A stretch of 64,000 nucleotides of DNA, from contig NC_091990.1 in NCBI RefSeq assembly GCF_044704955.1, forward strand, positions 177,568,001 through 177,632,000, given 5' to 3'. This stretch comes from Pristiophorus japonicus. Taxonomy: Eukaryota. This document shows, one piece after another, positions 19,043 through 49,861 of the stretch (within the stretch, counting starts at the first letter, position 1; each line of letters begins with the position of its first letter). The notes under the pieces are model-generated. The model did not search any database. It was not told the DNA's origin and was given only the letters and a program-made list of their open reading frames with translations. Made by a program: the position numbers and the translations under genes.

Positions 19043-19359
19043 TCAAAACTGAAGCAGGAAACTGCGTTCTGTAGGTGATGTGTTTGAACTTGTCCGCGTG
19101 ACTTTAATCTTGTATTCCATTTGATCATCATCGGCACTTGCAGTGAAAGTTAATTCTGCGAACTTGAAATATGTGTCCTCGATAGATTCTTCTATAGTCA
19201 CTCCACATTTGTCATTTGACTCAATTATTGCCTCTCCTCTGTACCATTCTACCTTAATATCTTTTGGAAAATATGCACATATATTACAGCTTAAAGTCAC
19301 CTCCTCTCCTTGTGTCAGGTCTGAACAGCATATGATATTAGGTACAACAGGAGGGGCTC
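19043..19359 (-). CDS. Gene B post-TM Ig C1-like domain 5, ending in a stop codon
   Basis: Acceptor ttcatttcag|; GAPPVVPNIICCSDLTQGEEVTLSCNICAYFPKDIKVEWYRG...ELTFTASADDDQMEYKIKVTRT...ERSFLLQF*. A gtaatt donor follows 2 nt after the TGA. Confidence 0.8.
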
Positions 19360-19516
19360 CTGAAATGAAGTAGAAAGACAAGTTTAGCCATGCAATAAAT
19401 TAATTAATTTATGTATTAACTTAGAACACATTTCTTTTAAAAGTACGTTTCTACCGGACATCCTTTCACCACTGCTTTTACTTTGTAATTCTTACAATTA
19501 CACTCAAATTAATTAG

Positions 19517-22500
19517 TGTGTTCCTAACACAGATGAGACTGCACACAGGGAGGTTAAAGTAACAGTGACCTCAGTCTTTATTAAGACACTCCAGAGTGAG
19601 GAACAGGCCTCAGGGGCCGGCTTATATACAGTGCTCCCAAGGGATGCTGGGATCCTTGGAACTTCAGGGGATGCGTTCCCTGGTGGCGGAACATGGGAGT
19701 GCATGCTTTACAGATACACAACATCACTCCCCCACAAAGTCAAAGTGAAAACTATTTACAAGGTGAGGCGGTCGGGAGCCTTTCTTTCCCTGGTGGACCA
19801 CCTCAGTACAAATGTCTGTTCTGGTGTGTTGGCTGTGCCTCGCTGGGCTGGCGTGTTGTTGGCCCTCCAGGGCTGCAGGGTGAGCCTGGCCTTGCTGGGC
19901 TGTTGGGCATGATGGGTTCAATTTCCTGGTCCGGGGCAGTGTCATTGATCATTTGGGTGTGTATTGTGGGCTCGACAAAAGGTGGTGTCTGCTGTGGGTT
20001 GTTCAGGGCAGTCTGTGAACCGCAGCCTCGCTTAGTCCAGGTGCTTTCTGCAAATTTGTCCATTGTCTAGTTTGACTACAAACACCCTATTCCCTTCTTT
20101 AGCTATCATCTTGCCCGCGATCCACTTGGGACCATGTCCATAGTTTAGCACATACACAGGGTCATTCAGATCAATTTCCCGTGACACAGTGGCGCGACCA
20201 TCGTTTACATTTTGTTGCTGCCGCCTGCTCTCTACCTGATCATGCAGGTTGGGGTGAACCAGCAAGAGTCTGGTTTTAAGTGTTCTTTTCATGAGTAGCT
20301 CAGCCGGGGGCACCCCTGTGAGCGACTGGGGTCTCGTGCAGTAGCTGAGCAGTACTCAGGACAGGCAGGTTTGGAGTGAGCCTTCTGTGACTCGTTTAAG
20401 GCTCTGTTTGATTGTTTGTACTGCCCACTCTGTCTGCCCATTGGAGGCTGGTTTAAACGGGGCCGAGGTGACATGTTTGATCCCATTGTGGGTCATGAAT
20501 TCTTTAAATTCGGCACTGGTGAAACATGGCCCGCTGTCACTGACCAGTATGTTAGGCAGGCCGTGGTGGCAAACATGGCCCTCAGGCTTTCAATGGTGGC
20601 AGTGGAGGTGCTTCCCGACATTATTTCACATTCAATCCATTTTGAAAAAGCATCCACCACCACCAGGAACATTTTACTGAGAAACGGGCCCGCATGGTCG
20701 ACATGGATCCTCGACCATGGTCTGGAGGGCCAGGACCACAAATTTAGTGGTGCATCTCTGGGCGGGTTGCTCAACTGAGCACACAGGCTGCATTGCCGTA
20801 CACAGGACTCTAAGTCAGAGTCGATACCGGGCCACCACACGTGGAATCTGGCTATCGCTTTCATCATTATTATACCTGGGTGTGGGCTGTGGAGATCTGA
20901 GATGAACGTCTCCCTGCCCTTTTTTGGTAGCACTACGTGGTTACCCTACAACAGGCAGTCTGCCTGAATGGACAGCTTGTCTTGTCGCTGCTGGAACGGC
21001 TTGATTAGCTCTTGCATTTCAACGGGGATGCTGGCCCAGCTCCCATACAGTACACAGTTTTTTACTAGGGACAGCAGAGGATCTTGGTCCAAGTCCTAAT
21101 CTGGCAGGCCGTGACAGGTGATTTATCATTTTCAAACACTTCAATGACCATCAACAAGTCTGCGGGCTGCGCCACCATCAACAAGTTTGCAGGCTGCGGC
21201 AGTTAAACCCCCGTGGTGGGCAATGGTAGCCGACTGAGAGCATCCACACAGTTCTCGGTGCCTGGCCTGTGGCGATGATATAGTTATACGCTGATAGCGC
21301 GAGTGCCCACCTTTATATGCGGGCTGAGGCATTAGTATTTATCCCCTTGTTTTCAGCGAACAGGGATATGAGGGGTTTCCAGCTCAAATTTGAGGCCAAA
21401 CAGGTACTGATACATTTTCTTTACCCCGAACACACACGCTAATGCCTCTTTCTCAATCATGCTGTAGGTCCTCTCGGCCTTAGACAAGCTCCTGGAGGCA
21501 TAGGTGAAAGGTTGCAACTTCCCCACAACGTTAACTTGTTGTAATACACACCCGACTCCGTACGATGACGCATCACATGCTAGCACAAGTCTTTTTACAC
21601 GGGTTATACAATACAAGCAGCTTGTTGGAGCATAAAATGTTTCTGGCTTTCTCAAAAGCAAATACTTGTTTTTTTTTTCCCATACCCAGTTCTCACCTTT
21701 ACGCAATAACACATGTAGGGGCTCTATGAGGGTGCTTAACCCCGGTAGCATGTTACCAAAATAGTTGAGGAGTCCCAGAAACGACCGCAGCTCCATGACG
21801 TTCTGTGGCCTGGGCACGTTTCTGATAGCCTCTGTCTTGGCGTCTGTGGGCCGAATGCCGTCCGCCGCGATCTTTCTCCCCATAAACTCCACTTCTCTTG
21901 CCATGAAGACGCATTTCAACCTCTTCAGCCGCAGCCCTATGCGATCCAATCACTGGAGGACCTCCTCCACGTTTTGTAGGTGCTCGACAGTGACCTGACC
22001 CGTGACCAATATGTCATCCTGAAAAACCACCGTGCATGGTACCGACTTGAGTAGGCTCTCCATGTGTCTCTGGAAGATCGCTGCAGCTGACCGAATTCCA
22101 AACGGGCATCTGTTGTAGATGAACAGTCCCTTGTGCGTGTTGATGCAGGTGAGGCCCTTCGAAGACTCCTCCAGCTCCTGCGTCATGTAGGTCGAAGTCA
22201 GGTTGAGCTTGGTGAACGTCTTGCCTCCTGCCAGCATCGCAAATAGGTCATCTGCCTTAGGTAGTGGGTATTGGTCCTATAGCAAGAAACGATTAATAGT
22301 TGCTTTATAATCACCACAAATCCTGACTGTGCCATCGCTTTTGAGTACTGGAACAATCGGGCTGGCCCACTCGCTGAATTCCACTGGGGAAATGATGCCC
22401 TCGCGTTGCAGCCTGTCCTGCTCGATTTCCACTCTCTCCCTCATCATGTGAGGTACCGCTCGCGTCTTGTGGTGAATGGGTCGTGCCTCTGGGACCAAGT

Positions 22501-24085
22501 GGATCTGCACCTTCACCCCGGAAAAGTTTCCAATGCCTGGCTCAAAAAGGGAAGGAAATTTGCTAAGAACCTGGGTACATGAGGCCTCATCGACATGTGA
22601 TAGCGCTCGGATGTCATCCCAGTTCCAGCGGATTTTGCCCAGCCAGCTCCTTCCAAGCAGTGTGGGGCCATCACCCGGGACAATCCAGAGTGGCAGTTCG
22701 TGCACCGTGCCCTCGTAGGTGACCTTGACCATGGCGCTGCCCAGGACAGTGATGAGCTCTTTGGTGTACGTTCTCAGTTTCGCGTGGATGGGACTCAGGG
22801 CTGGTCTGAATGCCTTGTTGCACCACCGTCTCTCAAACATCTCGTGATGGATTGGCTAGTGCCATTGTCCAGTTCCATAACTACGGGTAAGCCATTCAAT
22901 TTTACATTTAGCATTATAGGTGGACATTTCGTCGAAAATGTGTGCACCCAGTGTACTTCAGCATCTGCCTCCTCTCTCTGACACTCGAAATTGCTTTGAT
23001 CCACCATGGACTTATCTTCCTCTGCCACGTGGTGGTTAGCAGGTTTTGCAGAGCTTGCAGCTTGTCTGCAAGCTCGTTGGAGATGCCCCATTGTTCCACA
23101 GCTCGTGCAAACATACCCTTTGAAGTGGCATGAATAGGCTGAATGGAAGCCTCCCCAACGCCAACAAGGTGTGAATTGCCTTGAATTCATCCTTTGTTGC
23201 GGATTCTGAGTCATCTGGGTCACCTGAGGCCGACTGGCAGTTGCAGACTCATGGTTTCTGCCCTGTACATTTCTGCTCGCAAACACAGTTCCAGTTAATT
23301 TATGAACATTGCGAGCACTTGTGTGCTAAGAGATTTGTTTGGTGTTATCACTGGTGGACATAAACGCTTGTGCTATCGCAATGGCCTTACTGAGGGTCGG
23401 TGTCTCTACAGTCCAAAGTTTTCGTAGGATGGTCTCGTGGCCAATGCCCAGTACAAAAAAGTCTCTGAGGATCTGCTCCAGGTAGCCATCAAAGTCACAT
23501 TGTCCTGCAAGTCGCCTTAGCTCGGCGACGTAGCTCACCACTTCCTGACCTTCAGATCACTGGCACTTGTAGAACCAATGCCTCGGCATCAGCACACTCT
23601 CCCTCGGGTTAATATGTTCCCGAACCAGTGTACACAGATTCTCATACGACTTATCTGTGGGTTTCACCGGAGCCAGAAGATTCTTCATGAGGCTGTACGT
23701 CGGTGCCCCGCAGACCGTGAGGTGGACCGCTCTCCTTCCCCATCCAGCTCGTTGCCTACAAAGTACTGGTCTAGCCGTTCGACATAGGCTTCCCAGTCCT
23801 CACCCTCAAAGAACTTCTCCAGGATTCCCACATTTTGCTGCATCTTTGGTTGGATTCGTATACTCGTTGCCAGTTTTTGTGTTCCTAACACAGATGAGAC
23901 TGCACTGAGGGAGGTTAAAGTAACAGTGACCTCAGTCTTTATTAAGACACTCCAGAGTGAGGAACAGGCCTTAGGGGCCGGCTTATATACAGTGCTCCCA
24001 AGGGATGCTGGGATCCCTTGGGACTTCAGGGGATACGCTCCTTGGTGGCGGAACATGGGAGTGCATGCTTTACAGATACACAACA
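19517..24085 (-). mobile_element. Full-length degenerate Ty3/Gypsy (Mag-like) LTR retrotransposon in a gene B intron
   Basis: LTRs 19517-19723 and 23878-24085 (about 96% identical). PBS TGGCAACGAG (tRNA-Ser-like), PPT TGGGGGAGTGA. Frameshifted gag (CxxCxxxGHxxxxC knuckle), protease (MELDNG), RT (WASPIV, RICGDYK, FQDD), RNase H (LACDASSYGVG, EKEALA) and integrase (WSRIHVD, VVVDAFSKW). No clean TSD. Confidence 0.93.
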
Positions 24086-24181
24086 TTAATATGTTTTTTT
24101 TTCCACTGGAATCAGATTATTAACCCTTAGATTAGCAGCAACTCAGGAATTTCAGACTCTCCGGGACCAACCATTGTTTTT

Positions 24182-26215
24182 TAAGAACATAAGAAATAGG
24201 AGCTGGAGTAGGCCATTTGGCCCCTCAAGTCTGCTCCGTCATTCAATAAGATCACGGCTGATCTGATCATGGACTCAGTTCCACTTTCCTGCCTGTTCCC
24301 CATAACCCTTTACTCCCTTATTGCTCAAAAATCGGTCTATCTCCGCCTTAAATATATTCAATGACCCAGCCTCCACAGCTCTCTAGGACACAGAATTCAA
24401 TAGATTTACAACCCTCAGAGAACAAATTCCTCCTCGTCTCAGTTTTAAATGGGCGGTCCCTTACTCTGAGACTATGCCCCCTAGTTTTAGCTTCCCCTAT
24501 GAGTGGAAATATCCTCTCTGCATCCACCTTGTCGAGCCCCCTCATTATCTTATGTTCCAATAAGATAACCTCTCATTCTTCTGAACTCCAATGTGTATAG
24601 GCCCAACCTACTCAACCTATCCTCATCAGTTAACCCCCTCATCTCCAGAATCAACCTAGTGAGCCTTCTCTGAACAGCCTCCAATGCAAGTATATCCTTC
24701 CTTAAATACGGAGACCAAAACTGCATGCAGTACTCCACGTGTGGCTTCACCAATACCCTATACAGTTGTAGCAGGACTTCTCTGCTTTTATACTCTATCC
24801 CCCTTGTAATAAAGGCCAACATTCCGTTTGCCTTCCTGATTACTTACTGTACCTGCATACTAACTTTTAGTGTTTCATGCACAAGGACCCCCCAGGTGTC
24901 TCTACTGCAGCACTTTGCAATTTTCCCCATTTAAATTATAATTTGCTTTTCCCTTATTTTTTCCAAAGTGGATAACCTCACATTTTCCCACATTATACTC
25001 CATCTGTCAAATCTTTGTCCACTCATTAGTCTGTCTATATCCCTTTGCAGGTTTTTTGTATTCTCCTCACAATTTGCTTTCCCACCATCTTTGTATTATC
25101 AGCAAATTTGACTACATTACACTCGGTCCCTTCATCCAATTCATTAATATAGATTGTAAATAGTTGAGGACCCAGCACCGACCCCTGCGGCACCCCACCA
25201 GTCACTGTTTGCCAACTGGAAAATGCCCCATTTATCCCAACTCTCTGTTTTCTGTTAGTTAAACAATCCTCTATCCATGCTAATATATTAGCCCCAACCT
25301 CTTGAAATTTTATCTTGTGCAGTAACCTCTTATGTGGCACCTTATCGAATGCCTTCTGGAAATCCAAATACACCACATCCACTGGTTCCCCCTTATCCAC
25401 CCTGCTCATTACATCCTCAAAGAATACCAGCAAATTTGTCAAACATGATTTACCTTTCATAAATCCATGCTGACTCTGCTTGATTGAATCATGCTCTTCC
25501 AAATGGCCCGCTACTGCTTCCTTAATAATGGATTCCAGCATTTTCCCAATGACAGATGTTAGGCTAACTGGTCTATAGTTTCCTGCTTTTTGTCTGTCTC
25601 CTTTTTTAAATAGGGGTGTTACATTTGCGGTTTTCCAATCTGCTGGAACCGCCCCAGAATCCAGGGAATTTTGGTAGATTACAACCAATGCATCCATTAT
25701 CTCTGCAGCCACTTCTCTTAAGACCCTAGGATGTAAGCCATCAGGTCCAGGTGACTTGTCCGCCTTTAGTCCCATTATTTTACCTAGTACTACTTCATTG
25801 GTGATAGTGATTGTATTATGCTCCTCCCTGCCTATAGTCCCTTGAGAATCCACTATTGGGATGGTTTTAAGTGTCTTCTATCGTGAAGACCGATACAAAA
25901 TATTTGTTCAATGTCTCTGCCATTTCCTGTTCTCCATTATTAATTCCCCAGTCTCATTCTCCAGGGGACCAACATTTACTTGAGCCACTCTTTTCCTTTT
26001 GTACCTGTAGAAACTCTTACTATCTGTTTCTATATTTCATGCTAGTTTACTTTCATAATCTATTTTCCCTCTCTTAATCATTTTTTTAATCGTTCTCTGA
26101 TGGCTTTTAAAAATTTCCCAATCCTCTGGCCTCCCATTAGTCTTGGCCACATTGTTTTGAATGTGATACCTCCCTTATTTCCTTAGTTAGCCATGAATGG
26201 TTATCCCTTCTCTTT
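24182..26215 (-). mobile_element. CR1 LINE, 5'-truncated
   Basis: RT motifs [35 protein letters not shown]; 3' tail. Confidence 0.9.
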
Positions 26216-27471: not shown

Positions 27472-29650
27472 AACATAAAAACATAGAAACATAGAAATTA
27501 GGTGCAGGAGTAGGCCATTCAGCCCTTCGAGCAGCATCACCATTCAATAAGATCATGGCTGATCATTCAACTTCAGTACCCCTTCCCTGTTTTCTCTCCA
27601 TACCCCTTGATCCCTTTGACCATAAGGACCATATCTAACTCCCTTTTGAATATATCTAATGAACTGGCCTCAACAACTTTCTGCAGTAGAGAATTCCACA
27701 GCTTAACCATTCTCTGAATGAAGAAGTTTCTCCTCATCTCGGTCCTAAATGGCCTACCCCTTATTCTTAGACTGTGACCCCTGGTTCTGGAACTGCCCAG
27801 CCACGGGAACATTCTTCCTGCATCTAACCTGTCCAATCCCATCAGAATTTTGTGTTTTTATGAGATCCCCTCTCATTCTTCTAAACTCCAGTGGATACAA
27901 GCCCAGTTGATCCAGTCTCTCCTCATATGTCAGTCCTGCCATCCCGGGAATCAATCTGGTGAACCTTCGCTGTACACCCTTAATAGCAAAAACGTCCTTC
28001 CTCAGATTAGGGGACCAAAACTGAACACAATATTCCAGGTGTGGCCTCACCAAGGCTCTGTACAACTGCATTAAGACCTCCCTGCTCCTATACTCAAATC
28101 CTCTAGCTATGAAGGCCAACATGCCATTTGCCTTCTTCACCACCTGCTGTACCTGCATGCCAAACTTCAATGACTGATGTACCATGACACCCAGGTTCCC
28201 TTTTCCTACTCTGTCACCATTCAGATAATATTCTGTCTTCCTGTTTTTGCCACCAAAGTGGATAAGCTCACATTTATCCACATTATACTGCATCTGCCAT
28301 GCATTTGCCCACTCACCTAACCTGTCCAAGTCACCCTGCAGTCTCTTATCATCTTCCTCACAGCTCACACTGCCACCCAGCTTAGTGTCATCTGCAAACT
28401 TGGAGATATTACATTCAATTCCTTCATCAAAATCATTGATGTTTATTGTAAATAGCTGGGGTCCCAGCACTGAGCCCTGTGGCACCCCACTAGTCACTGC
28501 CTGCCATTCTGAAAAGGACCCGTTTATTCCGACTCTCTGCTTCCTGTCTGCCAACCAGTTCTCTATCCATGTCAGTACATTATCCCCAATACCATGTGCT
28601 TTAATTTTACACACCAATCTCTGTGTGGGACCTTGTCAAAAGCCTTTTGAAAGTTCAAATACATCACAGCCACTAGTTCTCCCTTGTCCACTCTACTAGT
28701 TAAATCCTCAAAAAATTCTAGAAGATTTGTCAAGCATGATTTCCCTTTCATAAATCCATGCTGACTTAGACCAATCCTGTCACTGCTTTCCAAATGCGCT
28801 GCTATTTCATCTTTAATAATTGATTCCAACATTTTCCCCACCACCTAACCAGTCTATAATTCCCCGTTTTCTCGCTCCTTCCTTTTTTAAAAAGTGGTGT
28901 TACATTAGCTACCCTCCAGTCCATAGGAACTGATCCAGAGTCAATAGAATGTTGGAAAATGATCACCAATGCATCAACTATTTCTAGGGCCTCTTCCTTA
29001 AGTACTCTGGGATGCAGCCTATCAGGCCCTGGGGAATTATCGGCCTTCAATCCCATCAATTTCCTTAACACAATTTCCTGACTAATAAGGATTTCCTTCA
29101 GTTCCTCCTTTTCACTACACCCTCGAACCCCTAGTATTTCCGCAAGGTTATTTTTGTCTTCCTTAGTGAAGACAGATCCAAAGTATTTGTTCAATTGGTC
29201 TGCCATTTCTTTGTTCCCCATTATAAATTCACCTGATTCTGTCTGCAATGGACCCACTTTGGTCTTCACTAATCTTTTTCTCTTCACATATCTATGGAAG
29301 CTTTTGCAGTCAGTTTTTATGTTCCCAGCAAGCTTCCTCTCATACTTTATTTTCCCCCTCCTAATTAGACTCTTTGTCCTCCTCTGCTGAATTCTAAATT
29401 TCTCCCAGTCCTCAGGTTTGCTGCTTTTTCTCACCAATTTATATGCCTCTTCCTTGGATTTAAGACTATCCCTAATTTACCTTGTTAGCCATGGTTGAGC
29501 TACCTTCCCCTTTTTTTTTACTCCAGACAGGGATGTACAATTGTTGAAGTTCATCCATGTAATCTATAAATATCTGCCATTGCCTATCCACTGTCAACCC
29601 TCTAAGTATCATTTGCCAGTCTATCCTAGCCAATTCACGTCTCATACCCA
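27472..29650 (-). mobile_element. CR1 LINE, 5'-truncated
   Basis: RT motifs [10 protein letters not shown] and FADD; (TTTCTATG)n-type tail. Confidence 0.9.
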
Positions 29651-29763
29651 GTCATCTCTTCCAGCCCATCACCACATTTCTCTTGCACATATTAAGATTG
29701 CATAATCAGGTAAGAAGAATCTGATATGTAAGGTAAAGCAAACAACTGAAAATGACCCCTTAC

Positions 29764-30819: not shown

Positions 30820-33700
30820 CTGCAGGAGTAGGCCTTTCAGCCCTTTGAGCCTGCACCACCATTCAATAAGATCATGGCTGATCATTCAGCTCAGTACCCC
30901 TTTCCTGCTTTCTCTCCATACCCCTTGATCCATTTAGCTGTAAGGGCCATATCTAACTCCCTCTTGAATATATCCAATGAACTGACATTAGCAACTCTCT
31001 GTAGTAGGGAATTCCACAAGTTAACAACTCTCTTCATCTCAGTCCTAAATGGCTTATACCTTATCCTTAGACTGTGTCCCCTGGTTCTGGACTTCCCCAA
31101 CATTGGGAACATTCAGCATCTAACCTGTTCAGTCCCATCAGAATTTTATATGTTTCTATGAGAACACCTCTCATCCTTCTAAACTCCAGTGAATACAGGC
31201 CCAGTCGATCTAGTTTCTCCTCATATGTCAGTCCTGCCATCCCGGGAATCAGCCTGGTGAACCTTCGTTGCACTCCCTCAATAGCAAGAATGTCTTTCCT
31301 CAGATTAGGAGACCAAAACTGAACACAATATTGCAGGTGAGGCCTCACCAAGGCCCTGTATAACTGCAGTAAGACCTCCCTGCTCCTATACTCAAATCCC
31401 CTTGCTATGAAGGCCAACATACCATTTGCCTTCTTCACCGCCTGCTGTACCTGCATGCCAACTTTCAATGACTGATGTACCATGACACCCAGGCCTCGCT
31501 GCACCTCCCCTTTTCCTAATCTGCCGCCATTCAGATAATATTCTGCCTTCGTGTTTTTGCCACCAAAGTGGATAACCTCACATTTATCCACATTATACTG
31601 CATTTGCCATGCATTTGCCCACTCATCTAACCTGTCCAAGTCACCCTGCAGCCTCTTAGCGTCCTCCTCACAGCTCACACCGCCACACAGCTAAGTGTCA
31701 TCCGCAAACTTGGAGATATTACACTCAATTCCTTCATCTAAATCATTAATGTATATTGTAAATAGCTGGGGTCCCAGCACTGAGCCCTGCAGCAACCCAC
31801 TAGTCACTGCCTGCCATTCTGAAAAGGACCCGTTTATCCCGACTCTCTGCTTCCTGTCGGCCAATCAGTTCTCTATCCACATCAGTCATCATCATCATAG
31901 GTAGTCCCTCGAGTCGAGGATGACTTGCTTCCACGTCAAAAAATTCACAGGTGTTTCAATGAGGGACCTAAAATTCCAGGTCCGAACAAAATCTTGAAGG
32001 GTGAAAAATGCCTGTGCGTGGATTTTTTTTAACGTGTGGTGACCGTTGCACACCAGCCACCACACAGGCTCGACAGAGCTAGGTCTTGGTCCAGTAGCAA
32101 GGGTTATCCAAGACGACTGGAGACCAGATCTGCTGCACGGACCTAGTGCGCACACATATCGCAGTGTGGGCTGGGCCCGTGCTGCCCCTGGCCCTCGCCT
32201 CTTCTGGGCCCCGAACTCACGCTTCTCCTGAGCCCCGATCACGTCCCTCTACAATCTCTAACTGCTCCTTCGCTCCGACCTTGCTGCTCCTGCAGTACAT
32301 GCCCATGCTCCAATCACCGACCTGGAACTTGATGACCTCACTCTTCGCTGCCGTTGCTCTCCTGCTCCAGCACTTGCTGCTCCCTGGAATGGTATGCTGC
32401 CACGCTGCCCCTTCCGCTCTCGTCCTGCTCTGATGGTGCTCGCGCCCACGTCAGTACATTACCCCCAATACCATGAGCTTTAATTTTGCACACCAATCTC
32501 TTGTGTGGGTCCTTGTCAAAAACCTTTTGAAAGTCCAAATACACCACATCCACTGGTTCTCCCTTATCCACTCTACTAGTTACATCCTCAAAAAATTCTA
32601 GAAGATTTGTCAAGCATGATTTCCCTTTCATAAATCCATGCTGACTTGGACCAATCCTGTCACTGCTTTCCAAATGCGCTGCTATTTCATCTTTAATAAT
32701 TGATTCCAACATTTTCCCCACTACTGATGTCAGGCTAACCGGTCTATAATTTCCCCGTTTTCTCTCTCCCTTCTTTTTTAAAAAGTGGGGTTACATTAGC
32801 TACCCTCCAGTCCAGAAGAACTGATCCAGAGTCAATAGACTGTTGGAAAATGATCACCAATGCATCCAATATATCTAGGGCCACTTCCTTAATACTCTGG
32901 GATGCAGACTATCAGGCCCTGAGGATTTATTGGCCCTCAATCCCATCAATTTCCCTAACACAATTTCCCACCTAATACGGATTTCCTTGAGTTCCTCCTT
33001 CTCACTAGACCCTCAGTCCCCAAGTATTAGCGGAAGTTTATTTGTGTCTTCCTTCGTGAAGCCAGAACCAAAGTGTTTGTTCAACTGGTCTGCCATTTCT
33101 TTGTTCCCCATTATAAATTCACCTGAATCCAACTGCAAGGGTCCTACGTTTGTCTTTACTAATCTTTTTCTCTTCATATATCTATCAAAGCTTTTGCAGT
33201 CAGATTTTATGTTCCCAGCAAGCTTCCTCTCATACTCTATTTCCCCCCTCCTAATTAGACCCTTTGTCCTTCAATTGTTGAAGTTCATCCATGTGATCTT
33301 TAAATGTTTGCCATTGCCTATTCTCCGTCAACCCTTTATGTATCATTCGCCAGTCTATTCTAGCCAATTCACGCCGCATTCCATCGGAGTTACCTTTCCT
33401 TAAGTTCAGGACCCTAGTTTCTGAATTAACTGTGTCACTCTCCATCTTAATAAAGAATTCTACCATGTTATGGTCACTCTTCCCCAAGGGACCTCGCACA
33501 ACAGGATTGCTAATTAGTCCTTTCTCATTACACATCACCCAGTCTAGGATGGCCAGCCCTCTGGTTGGTTCCTCGACATATTGGTCCAGAAAACTATCCC
33601 TAATACACTCTAGGAAATCCTCCTCCACTGTATTGCTACTAGTTTGGTTAGCCCAATCAATATGTAGATTAAAGTCGCCCATGATAACTGCTGTACCTTT
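30820..33700 (-). mobile_element. CR1 LINE (APE + RT), interrupted by a SINE-like insert
   Basis: MGDFN/SDH endonuclease motifs and RT motifs; insertion at 31887-32445. Confidence 0.9.
31887..32445 (-). mobile_element. Non-coding SINE-like element with an RTE 3' tail
   Basis: 10-bp TSD CCAC(A/G)TCAGT inside the CR1. Tail GTGGAAGCAAGTCATCCTCG...CCTATGATGATG is shared with the RTE copies. Other copies at 550-716 and 48737-49043. Confidence 0.8.
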
Positions 33701-35092: not shown

Positions 35093-35416
35093 CCGGCAGG
35101 ATTAGATTCATACTGCGTTCAACAGATATTGCTGACACACGTGGATGAGTAACTTTAATGCTGTATTCCACTTGATTGTCATCCAAGATGGGACTGAAAA
35201 TTGCTTTTGCAATTATATTGGGCAATCCACTTTCAGAAAATCCCCTTTCCTTCACTATTCCAAAGTTATCTCCATTTATGATTTCCACTTTGTCTCTGTA
35301 CCATTGAACCTCAATGTCTTTTGGAAACACTGTACTTATGGTGCAGAGCAATGTGACTTCTTTTCCTGCCTCAGCATCAGGGCTACAGGTGAGTTCTGAT
35401 ACGCTGGGGGGTGGCA
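35093..35416 (-). CDS. Gene B post-TM Ig C1-like domain 2
   Basis: 324-nt phase-1/1 exon (attccag| ... |gtaagc): VPPPSVSELTCSPDAEAGKEVTLLCTISTVFPKDIEVQWYR...DDNQVEYSIKVTHP. 83/108 residues identical to domain 1 by manual count. Confidence 0.85.
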
Positions 35417-36950: not shown

Positions 36951-37900
36951 GGGCCCAAGTTTCCACATGATTTGCGCCTGATTTTTAGGAGCAACTGGTG
37001 GAGAACGGACTATCTTAGAAATCGCAATTCTCCACATTTTTTTTTCTGCAGTTCTAGTCAGGTAGAACAGTTCTAGTTTAGAACAGAATTTTTTCTTCAA
37101 AAGGGGGCGTGTCTGGCCACTGACGCCTGATTTGAAAGATTCCACAGTGAAAACATACTCCAAACTAAAGTAGAATGGAGCAAGTGAAGATTTTTGTAGA
37201 ACTGAAAAAACCTGTTCTACACATTAAAAAATGAGGCGCAGGTTACAAATTAGGCATCCAGAACGAGGTGGGGGGGGGGGGAAGGGAAGTCATTAAATTC
37301 TACAATCAATCCTTATTTATACTTCTACAAATATTATACAAATAAATCCATCCTGAATAAACATTTATAAGCAAAGAAAAGATTAAATAAACCATCTTCC
37401 TACCTGTGTGAAAGTGCTTCAGCCATCGTTCGAAGGAAACCGCCATTTGTTGCTGCGCAGATGAGGGAGGGGAAGGAGACAGCGGTTTGTTGCCGCAGAG
37501 GGGAGGGAGGGGAAGGAGACAGTGAGAAGGGTAGCCTCAGTGCTGATGTGCTGATGGCAATGTGCTTTTATTAAAAAATGTTCAAAAATTAAACAGCTAC
37601 AAAGAACTACAAAAATGGCCGAGTGCCAATGTTTTCTTCACACTGAGCATGCGCGAACGCTCCAACGCGCACGCGCAGCGTTGACGGCAGAAAAAAACTA
37701 ATTTAAATAGTACCCGCCCCCTCCCACTTACAAAATCGGTGCGAGTGTAGGCTCCGCCCCCTGGGCACCGCGCCAAACAGACAAGGAGCTGCAAAGCGCT
37801 CGAGAATAGCGCGTTTTTTTTCTGGCGCTGTTTTAGGCGTGAAAAACGGGCGCCCAGCTCAGAGGGGCGCCCTTTTTTTATCCTGTGGAAACTTGGGCCC
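36951..37900. mobile_element. Non-autonomous PIF/Harbinger-like element
   Basis: Same TIRs; perfect 3-bp TSD TAC. Confidence 0.85.
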
Positions 37901-39376: not shown

Positions 39377-39619
39377 AACGTCTTCCGCTAGTTTCTCACC
39401 CCATTAAACTGAGCCAATATCTAATACAGCTTGCTGTCAGAATATTCAACATAATCATAATGTTAATCTAATATTTCAAAAAAATGGCTTTAATAAATTA
39501 ACTTCCCTAGTCAACTGCCGTATCTTTCTCATACAGTGCAAAATCAATTTTTCTCCAATCATGCCTTAAAATATTTAAATAGTATAGTGCAATGGAACCA
39601 AATGAAGCTGGACCCTTAC

Positions 39620-39943
39620 CCTGCAGGATTAGCTTCAAACTACGTTCAACAGGTATTGCCGATGCCCGTGGATAAATAACTTTAATGCTGTATTTCACTT
39701 GGTTGTCATCCAAGACGGGAATGAAATTTGCTTTTGCAATTATATTAGGCAATCCATCTTCAGGAAATCGCTCTTCCATCACCATTCCAACGTTACCTCC
39801 ATTTATGATTTCCACTTTGTTTCTGTACCATTGAACCTCAATGTCTTTTGGAAACAACGTACTTATGGTACAGAGCAATGTGACTTCTTTTCCTGGCTCA
39901 GCATCAGGGCTACAGGTGAGTTCTGATACTGTGAGGCGTGGCA
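39620..39943 (-). CDS. Gene B post-TM (predicted cytoplasmic) Ig C1-like domain 1
   Basis: 324-nt phase-1/1 exon (attcag| ... |gtaagg): VPRLTVSELTCSPDAEPGKEVTLLCTISTLFPKDIEVQWYR...DDNQVKYSIKVIYP...VERSLKLILQ. Confidence 0.85.
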
Positions 39944-40017
39944 CTGAATCATAGAAAAGAATGAGGAAAAGCATAAATGTAGACCTTCATGATGACCTAA
40001 GCGTAACTCAACAATAT

Positions 40018-41964
40018 GGGCCCAAGTTTCGGCCTCAGTTGCTCCTGATTTTTTGGAGCAACTGGTGTAGAACAGAGTATCTTAGAAATTCAAATTCCCG
40101 GCATTTAGTTTGCTCCAGTTCTAGTCAGTTAGAACAGTTTCACTTGGGATCAGAATTTTTTTTTCAAAAGGGGGTGTGTCCGGCCACTTACGCCTGTTTT
40201 CAAAGTTTCAGCGGTGAAAAATTACTCCAAACTAACTTAGAATGGAGTAAGTGAAGATTTTTGTACTCTCGAAAAAACCTTGTCTACACTTTAGAAAATC
40301 AGGCGTAGGTTACAAATCAGGCGTAGGGAATGGTTGGGGGGGTGGGGGGTTAAAGGGAAGTTTACAAACAATAAACACTTCAGTTTTACAAATAAAGAGC
40401 CATCGTCAATAATAAATGATAAAAACATCAATAAATCAACCAATAAATCAATCAAAAAAAATTAATAAGAACTAACTTTTTTTTTTAAATCAATAAATAA
40501 AACATTTTCTACTTACCGACTGCAGCACCGGGAGCCCTCCAACAGCGTGCTGGGATGCCCCCCTCAGTGTGTCTCTGTCAGTGTCTCTATCTCTCTGTCT
40601 GTCTGTCTGTGTGTGTCTCTCACTTTCTGTCTGTCAGTGTCTGTGTTTCTGACAGCGAGGGGAGGGGGAAGAGGGTGGTAGAGGGAGAGATGGGGGGGCA
40701 GGGGGAGGGGAGGGAGGGAGGCAGAGGGGGAGGGATGGGGGAGAATGGGGAGGGAAGGGGGAGAAGCGGGAGGGAAGGGGGAGGGGAGAGGAGAAGGGGG
40801 GGAGGAGAAGGGGAAGGGGGGAGGAGAAGGAGAAGGAGGGGGAGGAGAAGGGGAAAGGGGGGGGAGGAGAGGAGAAGGGGAAAGAGGGGGAGGAGAAGGG
40901 GAAAGAGGGGGGAAGAAAGGGAGGGAAAGAGAGGGGGGAAAGAGAGGGGGGGAAAGAGAGGGGGGAAAGAGAGGGGGGAAAGAGAGGGGGGGAAAGAGAG
41001 GGGGAAAGAGAGGGGAGGAATGAGAGGGGGGAAAGAGAGGGGGGAGAGGGGAGGAAAGAGAGGGGGAAAGAGAGGGGGAAAGAGAGGGGGGAAAGGGGGG
41101 GGAAAGAGAGAGGGGGGAAGGAAAGGAGAAGGGGGAAGGAGAAGGGGGAGAAGGGGGAGAAAGGAGGGGGGGAAGGAGGGGGGGGAGGAAAGGAGAAGGG
41201 GGAGGGAGGCTGAATGGGCCAGGCCAGTCCCCAGCACCAGATTTACAGGTAGGCGGCGTTGGGTCGGGTCGGGTCCGGGGTCGGGAGCGCGGGTCGGGTC
41301 GGGGATAGCGCGGGTCGGGGTCGGGAGCACGGGTTGGGTCGGGGGGGCGCAGGGAGGTCGGGTAGAGTCGGATCCGGTCCGGGGGGGTGGCGGTCGGGTC
41401 GGGTCGGGGGGGGGGGGAGGCGGCGGGCAGAGGGAGGTCGGGTCGGATCGGTTCGTGTCGGGGGCAGGGGGAGGGAGGGAGGGAGAGGGAGGTCAGGTCG
41501 GGTGGGGGGGGGGGGGGGGCCGGGTCGGGTCGGGTCCGGGGGCGGGGGAGGGGGAGTTGGGTCGGTGTCGGGGTCGGGTCTGGTCCGGGGGGTGGGGGAA
41601 GCGGGAGTCGAGTTGGGTCGGGAGGAAACAAGAGCTGGGCGTGGGAGGCAGCATTATGCACACAGCCCCAGTGAGGCCATTCGGCCAGGGCTAGGGACTG
41701 TGTGCTTCGGGCCCCCCCCCCCACACAGTTTTGGGCGCCTGGAGCTACTGCACATGCGCGTCCACTGTAGCGCGCATGTGCAGATGTCCCGGCACTGTTT
41801 TCAGCGCAGGGACCTAGCTCCGTCCCCTGCACCGCGCCGAGGGCCAGAGGACCTCCAGGGAGCCGGAGAATCTGTAAGTTTTTTTTAGGCGCACTTTGTG
41901 ACGCAAAAAACGGGCATCCAGGTCGGGGCTGCGCCGTTCTAGGCGCGGCCCGAAACTTGGGCCC
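40018..41964. mobile_element. Non-autonomous PIF/Harbinger-like element with GA-rich and (GGGTC)n core
   Basis: TIRs GGGCCCAAGTTTCGG ... CCGAAACTTGGGCCC; TSD TAT/CAT; paralogous empty site at about 35477. Confidence 0.85.
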
Positions 41965-42886
41965 CATCTGTTTTAGAAATATGGCTTTCACTTTCATTTG
42001 CAAAAATGCAGGGTCTCTCAAAACGAACTGAGGCTGTGAGCATGTTTCCACGTTGTAACTTACTGAGGATACCAGGTTGGCATATCCTGAACCCCACTAG
42101 TGAGCTACACTAAATGACCAAACATTCTTCATTAATTAAACTACAGAGTTTCCTGAATTTTTCCATTCAACTGCTGTTGTTAAAGAGCTCACTGCTACTG
42201 CCAATTTTTGTTATACGTTGGAAGCTGTCAGCGTTACAGAATCAACTTTTGATAAGTGTGTTTGCATCAGGTTATAGGAAGAAGCAATGTTTTTCAATAT
42301 TCAAACACCAGATTAGAGTTATAATAAGTCAAGTGCTTATACAAGACAAAACAGGAAAACTATGTGGATGCACTCTGTTTCGAATATATTTGCAAAAGTC
42401 TAAAAAACCCTTGTGTAACTGTATTTATTTTACCCACAGATGTTGAAGTATATATGTAGTTCAATTTGCAATATTTCGATATAATCTTTATAACATTTTC
42501 TGTCTGCTACATTACCAAAAGCATCATTGTATTTCAATTAAAAAATACTTCATTAAAATAAGAGATGAAATACAAGTGAATTTGTTAAGGCCTTCATATG
42601 CTAAGATCACCAGTGTAATTGCAACCCAATGCAATTTCACCCCTGCAATGCATTTACTGTGTGTGATTGTAGAATATAGCCTTTAAATGTATTTATTGTA
42701 CACAATTGTAGAGCTTAAGTGTATTTACTGCAGCCGGGGTGGTGGATTGCACCCAGTGCAAATGTATTGTACTGAAGCATTGATCAGTGATATACACACT
42801 TTAAAATGTAAAGCATGTTATAGGAATTACATAAGAGAACAGGTTTCAGTTCGAGCAGTTGTATTTATGAAGATAGGTGACATTAC

Positions 42887-45069: not shown

Positions 45070-46385
45070 GCAGGAAGCAAACAGTAATGGTTGATGGGTG
45101 TTTTTGTGACTGGAAGGCTGTAGTGGGGTTCCGCAGGGCTCAGTGCTAGGTCCCTTGCTTTTTGTGGTACATATCAATGACTTGGATTTGAATGTAGGGG
45201 GTATGATTAAGAGGTTTGCAGGTGGTACTAAAATAGGCCGTGTGGTTGATAATGAAGAAGAAAGCTGCGGACTGCAGAAAGGTATCAATATACTGGTCAG
45301 GTGGGCGGAACAGTGGCAAATGGAATTCAATATGGATAAGTGTGAGGTAATGCATTTGGGGAGGTCTAACAAGACAAAGGAATACACATTAAATGGTATG
45401 ACACTGAAAAGAGGAACAAAAAGACCTTGGAGTGCAGGTCCTCAGATTCCTAAAGTTAACAGGCTAGATAGATAAAGTGGTTAAGAAGGCATATGGAATA
45501 CTTGCCTTTATTAGTCGAGGCATGGAATACAAGAGCAAGGAGGTTAAGCTTGAAGTGTATAAAACACTAGTTAGGATGCAGCTGGAGTACTGTGTGCAGT
45601 TCTGGTCACCACATTACAGGAAAGATGTGATTGCACTGGAAAGGATGCAGAGGAGATTTACAAGAATGTTGCCTGGACTGGAGAATTTTAGCTATGAGGA
45701 AAGATTGGAGATGCTGGATGTGTTTTCTTTGGAACAGAGGAGGCTGAGGGACGACCTGATTGAGGTGTACAAAATTATGAGGGGCCTGGATAGAGTGGAT
45801 TGGAAGGACCTGTTTCCCTTAGCAGAGGGGTCAACAACCAGAGGACATAGATTTAAAGTAATTGCGGGGAGGTTTGGAGGAGATAGGAGGGGAAATTTCT
45901 TCACCCAGAGGGTAGTGGTGGTCTGGAACTCACTGCTTGAAAGAGTGGAAGAGGCAGAAAACCTCACCACATTTACAAATATTTTGTAAAGTCCTGTCCC
46001 CTCAGTACAGATTCACACGAGGCATGTAGTGAAGTCAAGGTCACTCTGGACCTGCACCTTTATTTCACAGCTCTGGAATGCTGCACTTGCCTGAGACCTG
46101 TCCTTATATACCTGTCTCTTGCAAGTGCACCCCTGGTGGTAAGGTATGCTGGTGGTTACAGGTCATATCTTATTACAGTCATGTATAGCATGTTAGGATA
46201 CAGTTATATATAATAATGTAAGATACATGACATATTTGGATGTTCATTTAAAGTGCCGAAACCTACAGGGCTACAGACCAAAAGCTGGAAAGTGGGATTA
46301 GGCTGGATAGCTCTTGGTCGGCCGGCGCAGACATGATGGGCCAAAATGGCCTCTTCCCGTGCAGTAAATTTCTATGATACTATGA
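45070..46385 (+). mobile_element. CR1 LINE 3' fragment (different subfamily)
   Basis: [10 protein letters not shown] and LEYCVQFWSP motifs; interrupted by a solo LTR. Confidence 0.85.
45985..46232. mobile_element. Solo LTR (another family) inserted in a CR1
   Basis: TG...CA termini, 5-bp TSD TATTT on both sides; the CR1 sequence resumes afterwards. Confidence 0.8.
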
Positions 46386-47566: not shown

Positions 47567-47887
47567 CTGTGACAACAATTTGAGCTTCCAATTTAGTGGC
47601 ATTAGGATGAGACGGGTGTTTCACAATGCATCGGTAATTAATACCATCATCTTCGAGGGTTGCTGCAATATATATTTGACTGGATTGATTAAATGTTCCA
47701 TCATCATTTCTAACCAGTCCACCTCCAGAGTCCTTGCTTGTAACACTTTCCGTTTTCCCATGTGATAACTTTTCCCAGCGGATATCTAGCTGCTTGGGAT
47801 AGAATCCAGTAACGTCACATCTCACAGACCCATTTGAGCCGTTTGGGATCGTAACCCGTTCAGTGGACAAGCTGATCTTTGGTCGAG
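47567..47887 (-). CDS. Gene B extracellular Ig C1-set exon
   Basis: 321-nt phase-1/1 exon (ttttgtacacag| ... |gtatgt): ARPKISL...VRCDVTGFYPKQLDIRW...NDDGTFNQSS...YRCIVKHPS. Canonical C1 motifs CxVxGFYP and YxCxVxH; four NxS/T sequons. Confidence 0.9.
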
Positions 47888-47909
47888 CTGTGTACAAAAA
47901 AACAAACGA

Positions 47910-49410
47910 AATTGAGCATTTGTCTGAGGCTGAACCAGATTGTTGCAACCTTGGTGTCATATTTGACCCTGAAATGAGCTTCCGAACACATATCCGCACC
48001 ATAACTAAGACTGCCTATTTCCACCTCCATAACTTTGCCTGTCTCCGCCCCTGCCTCAGCTCATCTACTGCTGAAACCGTCATCCATGTCTGTGTTACCT
48101 CTAGACTTGACTATTCCAATGCACTCCTGGCTGGCCTCCCATGTTCTACCCTTCGTAAACTTCAGGTCACTGAATGGTGGAACAGGCTTGAGGGGTTAAA
48201 TGGCCTACTCCTGTTCCTATGTTCCTACAAGCTTGATGACAGCAAACCGCCACTTAATTCTATTATTTTCAACCTTTGTTGTGTTCTGCATTAGGGGCCT
48301 TGACCCATGTCTCTCAATACAAAAAAAAGTCATGATTTTAGACCTGGTTATATCCAGAGGTACTGCACTAAATAACAGGCAATGTGTCAGCCTTGGCTCA
48401 GTGACAGGATTCTCACCTCTGAGCCAGAAGTTTGTTAGTTCAAGCCCCACTCCAGAGACTTGAGCACATAATAAGTGCAGTAGTGAGGGAATGCTACACT
48501 GTTGGAGTTGCCTTCTTTTGGATGAGATATTAAACCACCTCTCAGGTGTATGCAAAAGACCTCATGGCACTATGCAAAGAGCAGGGGAGTTCTCCCAGTG
48601 GCACGTCCAACACTTACCCCTCAGCCAACATCATTAAAACAGATTATCTGGTCATCACATTGCTCCTCTAATTCTGCCCTCTTGAGCATCCTTGATTATA
48701 ATCATTCAACCATTGGTGGCCGTGCCTTCTGTTACCAGGGGCAGCACGGGCCAGTCCACACTGCGATATGTGTGCGCACTAGGTCCGTGCAGCAGAGCTG
48801 TCTCCAGTCGTCTTGGTTAACCCTTGCCACTGGACCAAGACCTAGCTCTGTCAAGTCCATGTGGTGGCTGGTGTGCAACAGCCACCTCACATTAAAAAAA
48901 TCTATGCACAGGCATCTTCCACCCTTCAAGATGTAGTTCAGGATCTGGAATATTAGGTCCTTCATTGAAACACCTGTGAACTCATCCTTTTTTGGCGTGG
49001 AAGCAAGTCATCCTTGTTTCGAGGGACTGCCTATAATGATGATATCTAGGCCCGAAGCTCTGGAACTCTCTGCCTAAACCTCTCCGACTCTCTACCTCGC
49101 TTTCCTCCTTCAAGACACTCCTTAAAACATACCTCTTTGAACAAGCTTTTGATCATCTGCACTAATTTCTACTTATGCTGCTTGGTGTCAAATTTTTTAT
49201 CTCGTAATACTCCTGAGAAGCACCTTGGGACGTTTCACTACGTTAAAGGCACTATATAAATATAAGTTGTTATTGTCGTTGTTGTTTGTGGGACCTTGCT
49301 GTGTGCAGATTGGCTGCTGGGTTTCCTCACATCAAAAGTACTTAATTGGCTGTAAAGCACTATGGGACCTCCTGAGGCCTTAAAAGGTGCAATATAAATG
49401 CAAGTCCTTT
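47910..49410 (+). mobile_element. Nested L2 fragment with tRNA-SINE and RTE-tailed SINE pieces
   Basis: L2 RT motifs NLGVIFD and SRLDYSNALL; SINE head at about 48390; RTE-tailed repeat at 48737-49043. Confidence 0.7.
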
Positions 49411-49513
49411 CTTATCTTCTTGTGCGTGCTATAACCAATTTTAGCAAGCAGGTTTATGCACAAATATATTTTAAGATAGGTCTCAACAATACAGACAAAG
49501 TTTTTTTTATTAC

Positions 49514-49861
49514 CTAACACTTGGACCACTGAACTCTTTTCTGCTTTTAATGGAGTATAAAATACAGTACAGGTGTATTGTCCTTCTTCGTTGATTTGTA
49601 TTTTTGGAAGATACAGTGAAGCATTTCCTTTCCGCAAATCATCTTCATTAATTCTTGCGCCTGGTCTATCAGAGGAATGATTCCCTTCGTTAAACACATA
49701 CACCTTTCTCCTGATACTTTCATGAATCAAGAACCACTTGATAGCTACATAATCCAGGTCAAGCTCTGCAGTGTTAAAGCCTGACACTTTACATCCCAGA
49801 AGAACATCTTCATTCACGAGAACTTTCAGTGGAATTTGAAATATGTCCATATGCAAAGTAC
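49514..49861 (-). CDS. Gene B Ig V-set exon, B7-H6/NCR3LG1-like
   Basis: 348-nt phase-1/1 exon (ttcctgcaaag| ... |gtaata): GTLHMDIFQIPLKVLVNEDVLLGCKVSG...W...RPGARINEDDLRKGNASLYLPKIQINEEGQYTCTVFYTPLKAEKSSVVQVL. The RPGA / GxASLxLP / YxCxVxxTPLKA pattern matches B7-H6 as I recall it. Roughly half of the residues are identical to the gene A V domain. Confidence 0.9.

Follow-up and report, generated by a model that had tools for sequence, protein, structure and literature searches.

A B7-H6-like sawshark gene encodes five C1-set immunoglobulin domains beyond its transmembrane segment, probably on the cytosolic side

The C1-set immunoglobulin (Ig) domain is seen as an extracellular or lumenal hallmark of adaptive immunity, with Ig, TCR, MHC, beta2-microglobulin, tapasin, and B7 proteins as its carriers. 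Human B7-H6 (NCR3LG1, the NKp30 ligand) consists of a leader, a V-set domain, a C1-set domain, and a single transmembrane (TM) segment, and its tail is non-Ig, with gag-like similarity and ITIM/SH2/SH3-type motifs. Butyrophilins (such as BTN3A1 and BTN2A1; V-C-TM-B30.2) also link a B7-related ectodomain through one TM to a folded domain in the cytosol, and their B30.2 domain is joined elsewhere to the TRIM RING-B-box-coiled-coil and to the pyrin domain (PYD). Integrin beta4 is a type I protein whose long cytoplasmic tail, a scaffold, is built of FnIII modules that are otherwise typically extracellular, and the tandem Ig domains of titin and obscurin fold in the cytosol of muscle without the need of a canonical disulfide. 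IGSF1 has Ig domains on either side of an internal hydrophobic region; its linker is cut while the protein is being translated, which leaves the two halves in the lumen. UrIg2 of elasmobranchs is a non-rearranging IgSF gene encoding a V domain, nine C1 domains, and a TM (PMC12227049). Here, we describe a sawshark gene in which a B7-type ectodomain and a TM segment are followed by five further Ig domains.

The gene lies on the minus strand of the 64-kb stretch of Pristiophorus japonicus DNA that was analysed (the window), and its features are listed in Table 1. The initial annotation had proposed eight minus-strand GT-AG exons, all of phase 1, forming one frame V-C1-TM-five Ig-stop, and this was borne out exon by exon by the public model P0176 (UniParc UPI00398F41B3, P. 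japonicus, 822 aa; database name "CD276 antigen-like"), which holds all eight exon translations exactly and contiguously. A polypyrimidine-AG acceptor is present on 8/8 exons and a GT donor on all but the last; joined, the exons amount to 2390 nt with the sole stop at the end, as judged by frame count. Searches were run with the single exons, and analyses of the whole protein used P0176. The leader of P0176 (residues 1 to 26) is absent from the window. When a tail-domain profile was run against the six-frame translation of the window, it matched the five tail exons and the C1 exon and nothing else, indicating that there are no extra tail-Ig copies in the window.

Table 1. Features of the sawshark gene (positions in the window)
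Feature	Positions	Strand	Length and phase	Pfam match	Remarks
V-set Ig exon	49861-49514	minus	348 nt, phase 1	V-set, 30.6 bits	P0176 residues 28-142
Ectodomain C1-set Ig exon	47887-47567	minus	321 nt	C1-set, 37.9 bits	canonical Cys pair; four N-glycosylation sequons
Stalk and TM exon	42994-42887	minus	108 nt, phase 1-1		ends ...YCYIKKRQT
Tail Ig1 exon	39943-39620	minus	324 nt	C1-set, 30.7 bits	no F-strand Cys
Tail Ig2 exon	35416-35093	minus	324 nt	C1-set, 30.8 bits	sawshark-specific duplicate of Ig1
Tail Ig3 exon	30669-30343	minus	327 nt	C1-set, 38.2 bits
Tail Ig4 exon	30084-29764	minus	321 nt	C1-set, 19.2 bits	neither canonical Cys; holds predicted homodimer interface
Tail Ig5 exon and stop	19359-19043	minus	317 nt	C1-set, 35.9 bits	...ERSFLLQF*; in-frame TGA 19045-19043

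Gene predictors are able to chain phase-compatible Ig exons, and since all Ig exons here are phase 1, a short B7-H6-like gene could have been glued to a separate poly-Ig gene; the Bufo model P0204 looks as if a B7-like gene and a PYD-Ig gene had been combined in this way. Against such an artefact, no start, leader, V, or extra Ig exon separates the TM exon from Ig1 or follows Ig5 within the gene. The earlier claim that the gene contains no second leader, V, or TM thus holds, and the next V exon (413-78, minus) belongs to a tandem paralogue downstream of the stop. The same chain and stop are seen in orthologue models of three shark orders, those of Heptranchias and Heterodontus sharing the ...LLQF C terminus, and in isoform X3 of the Heterodontus orthologue, which NCBI names "obscurin-like", the TM exon is followed by the second tail Ig. 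Furthermore, the TM is directly followed by Ig in 90 proteins of many lineages. We consider a gene-model artefact, in the form of a two-gene chimera, very improbable. Identities to Heptranchias and Heterodontus are 62 to 84% for the tail domains, 79 and 88% for V, and 75 and 82% for C1; at the sequence level, the tail is as conserved as the ectodomain among the three shark orders. The sawshark locus is best explained as a real, conserved gene, and its exon structure, domain identities, and conservation across shark orders are established.

The ectodomain has the B7 layout, with one V-set and one C1-type Ig ahead of a single TM, as seen by Pfam, in the TM exon, and in the AlphaFold2 (AF2) full-length model. 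Compared with solved structures, the V exon matched human NCR3LG1/B7-H6 (E 1.8e-12), CD276 (1.1e-11), and TAPBPR (2.3e-06), with a small margin between NCR3LG1 and CD276, whereas V-C1 of the shark orthologue P0001 gave E values of 5.6e-28 for NCR3LG1, 1.8e-20 for TAPBPR, and 2.7e-16 for CD276. Among solved structures, NCR3LG1 is nearer than other B7, tapasin, and butyrophilin proteins, and its top rank for both queries supports the original B7-H6-like call. Mammalian B7-H6 was not among the proteins reached by word-indexed searches. An alligator member of the family is named NCR3LG1 by NCBI and shows the same architecture, with best-matching tail domains. The sawshark C1 exon best matches the ectodomain C1 of the alligator, coelacanth, and lungfish relatives. 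The protein is best read as a type I membrane member of the B7 family, on its B7-H6 (NCR3LG1) branch. It differs from human B7-H6 in the tail, which is non-Ig in the human protein and consists of five C1-set Ig domains in the sawshark.

To which side of the membrane the tail belongs was judged from several features. P0176 contains a sole TM-grade segment by Kyte-Doolittle hydrophobicity (19 residues), with a value of 2.69 at residue 257 and 1.54 for the next one, and the AF2 model has a helix at residues 260 to 279. IGSF1 resembles the sawshark protein in having Ig domains on both sides of a hydrophobic region, but the sawshark protein has a single hydrophobic segment, without a further signal-like one. 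An IGSF1-like topology with both Ig blocks lumenal was rejected on account of this lone segment (threshold 1.6). The 15-residue flanks of the TM carry a mean net charge of +3.1 after versus −0.4 before it (n = 90 family proteins), a positive-inside pattern, and the observed/expected ratio of N-glycosylation sequons in sharks is 2.63 for the ectodomain but 0.50 for the tail. The cytoplasmic placement put forward in the initial annotation is supported inferentially by the single TM segment, the positive-inside flanks, the lack of a canonical disulfide, and the sequon-poor shark tails. From topology rules, disulfide loss, sequon depletion, and the TRIM/PYD fusions described below, the five tail Ig domains are probably cytosolic.

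The best Pfam match of all five tail exons is C1-set, and all but Ig4 (19.2 bits) lie above its cut-off of 21 bits. None of the sawshark tail domains has the canonical B-F disulfide of the C1-set: the F-strand Cys position is Ile or Met in 5/5 domains, and in Ig4 the B-strand Cys is missing as well. The tail domains of the Heptranchias and Heterodontus orthologues are likewise devoid of the F-strand Cys. All five tail domains are beta-sandwiches in the AF2 full-length model. A model of Ig1 (pLDDT 83.8) retrieved MHC class II, HLA-DM, MHC class I or CD1 entries, and beta2-microglobulin as its best 50 Foldseek matches, the nearest folds being the membrane-proximal domains of MHC class II/HLA-DM and beta2-microglobulin. 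The tail differs from titin and obscurin, whose domains are I-set. UrIg2, too, is a shark gene that combines a V domain with serially duplicated C1 exons (PMC12227049), but its TM follows all C1 domains and its disulfides are kept, whereas in the sawshark gene the TM precedes five of six C1-type domains.

The post-TM Ig layout, which was then looked for in other lineages, recurs from sharks via amphibians to alligator. V-C1-TM-(Ig)n with positive-inside flanks was found in 90 predicted proteins from sharks, bichirs, coelacanth, lungfish, amphibians, and alligator, and all the relatives compared are computational gene models. Sawshark tail domains best match the tail domains, not the ectodomain C1, of the alligator, coelacanth, and lungfish proteins; for Ig3, the best matches lie in the tails of the coelacanth (42% identity, E 4e-17) and alligator proteins. 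The literature searched gave no account of B7-H6 homologues with Ig domains placed after the TM or in the cytosol, or of TRIM-C1-set or PYD-C1-set proteins, and the novelty of a cytosolic Ig tail is provisional.

The TM exon is a frame-neutral cassette (108 nt, phase 1-1), and its skipping therefore preserves the frame. In three bichir genes, RefSeq isoform pairs differ by exactly the 31-aa TM segment, and secreted forms would result from the TM-skipped models; a frog model (P0041) joins C1 straight to a tail-type Ig. Bichir tails are also rich in sequons (observed/expected 1.74), so the array in the bichir lineage probably exists outside the cell as well, and the canonical Cys pair is retained in most osteichthyan tail domains and, over the wider family, in 61% of those that follow the TM. 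Together, these features could mean that the tail Ig exons serve mainly or only in secreted, TM-skipped V-C1-(Ig)5 proteins, with a short or minor membrane isoform and an array that works extracellularly, as in a long soluble or matrix-bound IgSF protein of the UrIg kind. Sharks speak against this: all their tail domains lack the F-strand Cys, their sequons are abundant in the ectodomain and scarce in the tail, and the TM is present in 4/4 Heterodontus RefSeq isoforms and in the models of Heptranchias and the sawshark. TRIM-Ig and PYD-Ig proteins, moreover, use this Ig module without a signal peptide. We regard the secreted form as an unlikely main site of the array; were it the only one, the finding would shrink to an unusual cassette-TM IgSF gene family. 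The 61% retention of the Cys pair was rejected as decisive proof of a lumenal tail because 12/13 domains of the TRIM-Ig and PYD-Ig models have it too.

These fusions place the Ig module in further protein contexts. At least seven models in two bichir species combine a TRIM (RING-B-box-CC) with three C1-set domains, and their Ig part is 49 to 63% identical to V-set/C1-set-family Ig-array proteins of the same species, those checked having a post-TM array. In the frog Pseudophryne, a model starts with an N-terminal PYD followed by three Ig domains, with neither signal peptide nor TM. The occurrence of the same Ig type in TRIM and PYD proteins lends further support to a cytoplasmic tail. Judged from these predicted proteins, the TRIM, PYD, and membrane-protein contexts of the C1-set module mirror the distribution of B30.2, which occupies the same three. 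No SPRY/PRY (B30.2) Pfam match was found in any exon or in P0176, which sets the protein apart from butyrophilins: the cytosolic module is B30.2/PRY-SPRY there and a C1-set Ig array here.

We propose, with slightly better than even confidence, that the protein is a type I, NK-ligand-like molecule bearing a cytosolic C1-set array as a dimerising or partner-binding module. The signal peptide, V, and C1 would be extracellular, a single stop-transfer TM helix flanked by basic residues on its cytosolic side would come next, and about 535 residues would form five tandem disulfide-less C1-set Ig domains in the cytosol. This folded protein-interaction module might pair via the same sheet face as other C1-set dimers, and by binding cytosolic partners it could make the display, clustering, or signalling of the NKp30-ligand-like ectodomain respond to the cell's state, the role held by B30.2 in butyrophilins, TRIMs, and pyrin. 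The initial annotation suggested a scaffold, sensor, or decoy as putative functions. Integrin beta4 offers a similar design, a type I protein with a cytoplasmic tail of extracellular-type modules, although it belongs to an unrelated family, uses FnIII rather than Ig, and has a non-immune function. The tail might instead act once freed, if proteolysis at or near the TM released a soluble poly-Ig fragment into the cytosol or nucleus. This version, which we find improbable, draws on the analogy with type I proteins that undergo intramembrane proteolysis and on TRIM-Ig and PYD-Ig as soluble cytosolic forms of the module.

If the membrane-bound array is indeed cytosolic, its conservation on an NK-ligand-like protein would overturn the extracellular-only view of the C1-set, and the TRIM and pyrin fusions would add to this. 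B7-H6, whose mammalian tail resembles a late replacement, would gain an intracellular domain of ancestral origin and with a function open to testing, and the theme of sensor domains shared by butyrophilins, TRIMs, and pyrin would extend to a second fold. The family may also represent a natural system in which skipping of one exon places one Ig array inside or outside the cell. In a broader and rather doubtful extension, the post-TM array would be an ancient module that jawed vertebrates use in the cytosol for recognition or oligomerisation, interchangeable with B30.2 and carried by B7-H6-like ligands (sharks to crocodilians), TRIM E3 ligases (bichirs), and pyrin-domain adaptors (frogs). It could then provide intracellular Ig-based innate sensing that ties cytosolic events to NK-ligand display, ubiquitination, or inflammasome-type signalling, with TM-exon skipping exporting the array in some lineages.

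Dimerisation of the tail was also predicted by structure modelling. The Ig4-Ig5 homodimer reached an ipSAE of 0.59 versus 0.00 for the best control, with pLDDT ≥86 and 100% agreement of contacts from run to run; the pass mark was reached by 21/30 solved one-chain pairs and by 0/23 single chains. The predicted interface on Ig4 comprises P0176 residues 617-624, 632, 634, 667-673, 675-676, and 678, and it may echo C1-set dimers remembered by the model.

Two minor observations concern the evolution of the tail domains. Ig1 and Ig2 share 77% aa and 88.8% nt identity, their flanking introns are 73 to 78% identical, and other sharks have one copy as their counterpart. Their dN/dS of about 0.92, calculated from few sites, does not show constraint on the duplicates, though the exons are more alike than the flanking introns. 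A cysteine in the A strand, which may mark one conserved domain type only rather than an alternative disulfide partner, was present in 33/74 domains without the F-strand Cys versus 20/194 of the other domains.

A database search retrieved P0176 (UniParc UPI00398F41B3, "CD276 antigen-like"), an 822-amino-acid (aa) public model from Pristiophorus japonicus on which all whole-protein steps were run. P0176 contains all eight exon translations, exact and contiguous, with one junction residue between each, and the spliced model put forward in the initial annotation is thus the public gene model. The joined exons sum to 2390 nt with one stop only, a TGA at 19045-19043 that lies two codons past the splice point of the other Ig exons; all eight exons have a polypyrimidine-AG acceptor, and a GT donor follows all but Ig5, the last of them. 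The 26-residue leader of P0176 was not found in the window. When a profile of the tail domains (Ig1 to Ig5, after the transmembrane segment, TM) was run over all six reading frames of the window, it matched only the five tail exons and the C1 exon.

Coordinates of exons, duplicated segments and repeats in the window
Feature	Position	Strand	Remarks
V exon	49861-49514	-	phase 1; Pfam V-set
C1 exon	47887-47567	-	phase 1; Pfam C1-set
TM exon	42994-42887	-	phase 1; 108 nt
Ig1 exon	39943-39620	-	phase 1; top Pfam score C1-set
Ig2 exon	35416-35093	-	phase 1; top Pfam score C1-set
Ig3 exon	30669-30343	-	phase 1; top Pfam score C1-set
Ig4 exon	30084-29764	-	phase 1; top Pfam score C1-set, slightly below cut-off
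Ig5 exon	19359-19043	-	phase 1; top Pfam score C1-set; contains stop
Ig1/Ig2 duplication	39553-39994 vs 35025-35467		sequence comparison within window
Ig1/Ig2 duplication	42039-42328 vs 35518-35823		sequence comparison within window
Second B7-H6-like V-set exon	78-413	-	AG acceptor, GT donor
Low-complexity element	40555-42051		TM-Ig1 intron
Similar element	17500-18841		just downstream of Ig5
N runs	17537-18052		left unaltered
Pair of similar ORF-bearing segments	36786-37163 and 17006-17257		
Retroelement remnant, intronic/flanking	20032-23541	-	Pfam scan, ORF 20496-21949
Retroelement remnant, intronic/flanking	24348-25853	-	Pfam scan, ORF 25038-25853
Retroelement remnant, intronic/flanking	27573-29437	-	Pfam scan, ORF 27757-28617
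Retroelement remnant, intronic/flanking	31067-33682	-	judged by eye from ORF translations
Retroelement remnant, intronic/flanking	45143-45989	+	judged by eye from ORF translations
Retroelement remnant, intronic/flanking	61145-63574	+	Pfam scan, ORF 61699-62733

Among solved structures, the top match of the V exon was human NCR3LG1 (B7-H6; E 1.8e-12), with CD276, TAPBPR, and PD-L1 next in rank, and the V-C1 part of the Heptranchias orthologue gave B7-H6 (5.6e-28), TAPBPR (1.8e-20), and CD276 (2.7e-16). Since NCR3LG1 ranks first in both cases and an alligator member of the family carries this very name at NCBI, describing the ectodomain (V and C1) as B7-H6-like, as had been done from the sequence alone, is justified.

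Each of the five tail domains keeps its B-strand region and invariant Trp but has Ile or Met at the F-strand Cys position, and Ig4 is devoid of both canonical cysteines. AlphaFold2 folded Ig1 as a seven-strand sandwich, with a pLDDT of 83.8 for the best model and 38 to 56 for the other four (from a five-sequence alignment), and in Foldseek this model was closest to beta2-microglobulin and to the membrane-proximal C1 domains found in HLA-DM, HLA-DO, and MHC class II. In the full-length model predicted for P0176, a signal helix (residues 6-24) precedes V and C1, which have a pLDDT near 90; the TM helix spans residues 260-279, and the five sandwiches after it are mostly at a pLDDT of 70 to 87.

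Orthologues with the order V-C1-TM-tail Ig and the sawshark C-terminus (...ERSFLLQF) were found in Heptranchias perlo (XP_067849689.1, 761 aa) and in Heterodontus francisci (X1 to X4; 755, 753, 645, and 581 aa), and their tail domains have lost the same cysteines. In X3, the TM exon is followed at once by the second tail Ig; X4 (P0209) has an alternative 5' end, starting just before C1 without leader or V. These orthologues have four tail domains versus five in the sawshark, in which Ig1 and Ig2 represent a sawshark-specific tandem exon duplication that is absent from the other two sharks; the two exons are 88.8% identical and their flanking intron 73 to 78%, with a dN/dS of about 0.92 (from few sites). 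Identities of the sawshark protein to Heptranchias/Heterodontus are 79/88% for V, 75/82% for C1, and 62 to 84% for the tail Ig domains. Across three shark orders, conservation of the tail thus about equals that of the ectodomain.

Searching 1.84 billion representative proteins with the tail-domain profile yielded 593 hits, dozens of which are composed of V (~1-125), C1 (~130-240), and TM (~250-270), with four to ten or more Ig domains behind it. Such proteins occur in frogs, a salamander, bichirs, lungfish, coelacanth, alligator, and sharks, and their gene models bear public names such as "uncharacterized", "CD276 antigen-like", and "obscurin-like". In the alligator, coelacanth, and lungfish proteins, the closest relatives of the sawshark tail domains are tail domains (Ig3 is 42% identical to coelacanth residues 663-753, E 4e-17), and the sawshark C1 finds its best match in the ectodomain C1 of these same relatives. 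These tail-to-tail and C1-to-C1 matches indicated that the tail domain type, as something separate from the ectodomain C1, is older than the split between cartilaginous and bony fish. Both canonical cysteines are kept in 163 of the 268 post-TM domains family-wide, and the F-strand Cys is lost in 28% of post-TM domains versus 4% of pre-TM C1 domains.

On which side of the membrane does the tail reside? P0176 shows a cleavable-type leader and a single TM-grade segment (Kyte-Doolittle 2.69 at residue 257; next highest, 1.54), with KKRQ following the TM. Across 90 family members with one internal TM and then tail-type Ig, the mean net charge over 15 residues is +3.1 after the TM versus -0.4 before it, and the post-TM flank is the more positive one in 77 proteins. 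N-glycosylation sequons were compared with the expectation from shuffled sequences; Ig5 of the sawshark has a single NTS site. In the three sharks, 20 were observed in the ectodomain where 7.6 are expected, versus 4 against 8.0 in the tail; the observed/expected ratios for ectodomain and tail were 1.40 and 1.74 in bichirs, and 1.29 and 1.10 in lobe-fins and tetrapods. Taken together, the usual topology rules, the disulfide loss, and this sequon contrast lead us to infer a cytosolic shark tail.

An alternative is that the TM is skipped, in which case the leader would be retained and the secreted products would have their entire Ig array outside the cell. RefSeq isoform pairs of three bichir genes differ solely by a 31-residue TM segment (LOC120536421, 1064 versus 1033 aa; LOC114661614 and LOC120536427, each 837 versus 806 aa; protein pairs P0211/P0185, P0212/P0102, and P0196/P0213), the bichir tails are sequon-rich and retain their cysteines, as fits secreted products, and the sawshark TM exon is likewise a frame-neutral cassette (phase 1-1). 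However, no TM-skipped form was found among the shark isoform models examined, the TM exon is present in all four Heterodontus isoforms, and the features of the shark tail argue against a secreted form. The single TM, positive flank, lost disulfide, and few sequons make the cytoplasmic placement put forward in the initial annotation probable for the sharks; in bichirs, the array probably also occurs outside the cell.

Tail-type Ig domains were also detected in two other protein contexts. At least seven TRIM models from Polypterus senegalus and Erpetoichthys calabaricus (P0149, P0187, P0188, P0193, P0200, P0201, and P0203; on no fewer than three sequence records of Polypterus and one of Erpetoichthys) have a RING, a B-box, and a coiled-coil, then two or three tail-type Ig domains. 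Four of them were scanned with Pfam, and each showed three C1-set stretches in place of the usual B30.2. The Ig part of the TRIM models shows 49 to 63% identity to proteins that, in the same two species, belong to the V-set/C1-set family and contain an Ig array; in the ones checked, this array comes after the TM. One TRIM-Ig gene, LOC120536422, shares its sequence record with a run of V-set/C1-set-family genes and has a locus number within theirs. In the frog Pseudophryne corroboree, P0205 carries an N-terminal pyrin domain (PYD; PAAD/DAPIN, residues 9-83) and then three tail-type Ig domains, with neither leader nor TM; P0204 from Bufo gargarizans looks like a read-through model fusing a B7-like gene to a PYD-Ig gene. 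The canonical Cys pair is kept in 12 of the 13 TRIM-Ig and PYD-Ig domains, and therefore Cys retention elsewhere in the family was rejected as a sign of a lumenal tail. B30.2 is known from butyrophilins, TRIM proteins, and pyrin, and the tail-type Ig module turns up in the matching settings, namely a B7-like membrane protein, TRIM, and PYD.

C1-set domains usually act in pairs. In a two-copy prediction, P0176 residues 612-822 (Ig4-Ig5) gave an ipSAE of 0.59 versus 0.00 for the best of three controls, passing a mark that, in the calibration of the method, was attained for 21 of 30 solved same-chain pairs and for none of 23 proteins solved as single chains; contacts agreed 100% between runs, at a pLDDT of at least 86. 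The predicted interface is symmetric and wholly in Ig4 (residues 617-624, 632, 634, 667-673, 675-676, and 678). Judging by where these residues fall in the domain, we assign them to strands A, B, and D/E, the sheet through which other C1-set dimers pair. This pass may stem from solved C1-set dimers already known to the predictor. For the role of the tail, for which a scaffold, sensor, or decoy had been proposed, we lean slightly towards an NK-ligand-like protein of type I with a cytosolic Ig rod that would dimerise and bind cytosolic partners, and through which ligand display or signalling would be coupled to the state inside the cell, in the manner of B30.2 in butyrophilins. A search of the accessible literature turned up neither post-TM Ig domains described for B7-H6 homologues nor TRIM-Ig or PYD-Ig proteins, and an earlier mention, as raised in the initial annotation for some non-mammalian B7-H6 homologues, is possible.

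Retroelement remnants in the introns and flanks comprise several LINE reverse-transcriptase fragments and an LTR-type pol remnant that carries integrase zinc-binding and RNase H domains; across them, Pfam recorded RT_RNaseH, Integrase_H2C2, and RVT_1. The TM-Ig1 intron holds a low-complexity stretch rich in purines and GC (GC 0.58), with many short tandem repeats; a similar one, partly masked by N runs, follows Ig5, and a further pair of similar ORF-bearing segments was noted. This has the look of a dispersed repeat. Located 18.6 kb downstream of the stop, a second V-set exon, about 50% identical to the V of the gene under study, presumably marks where the Ig exons of the next tandem paralogue begin, with its remaining exons beyond the window.
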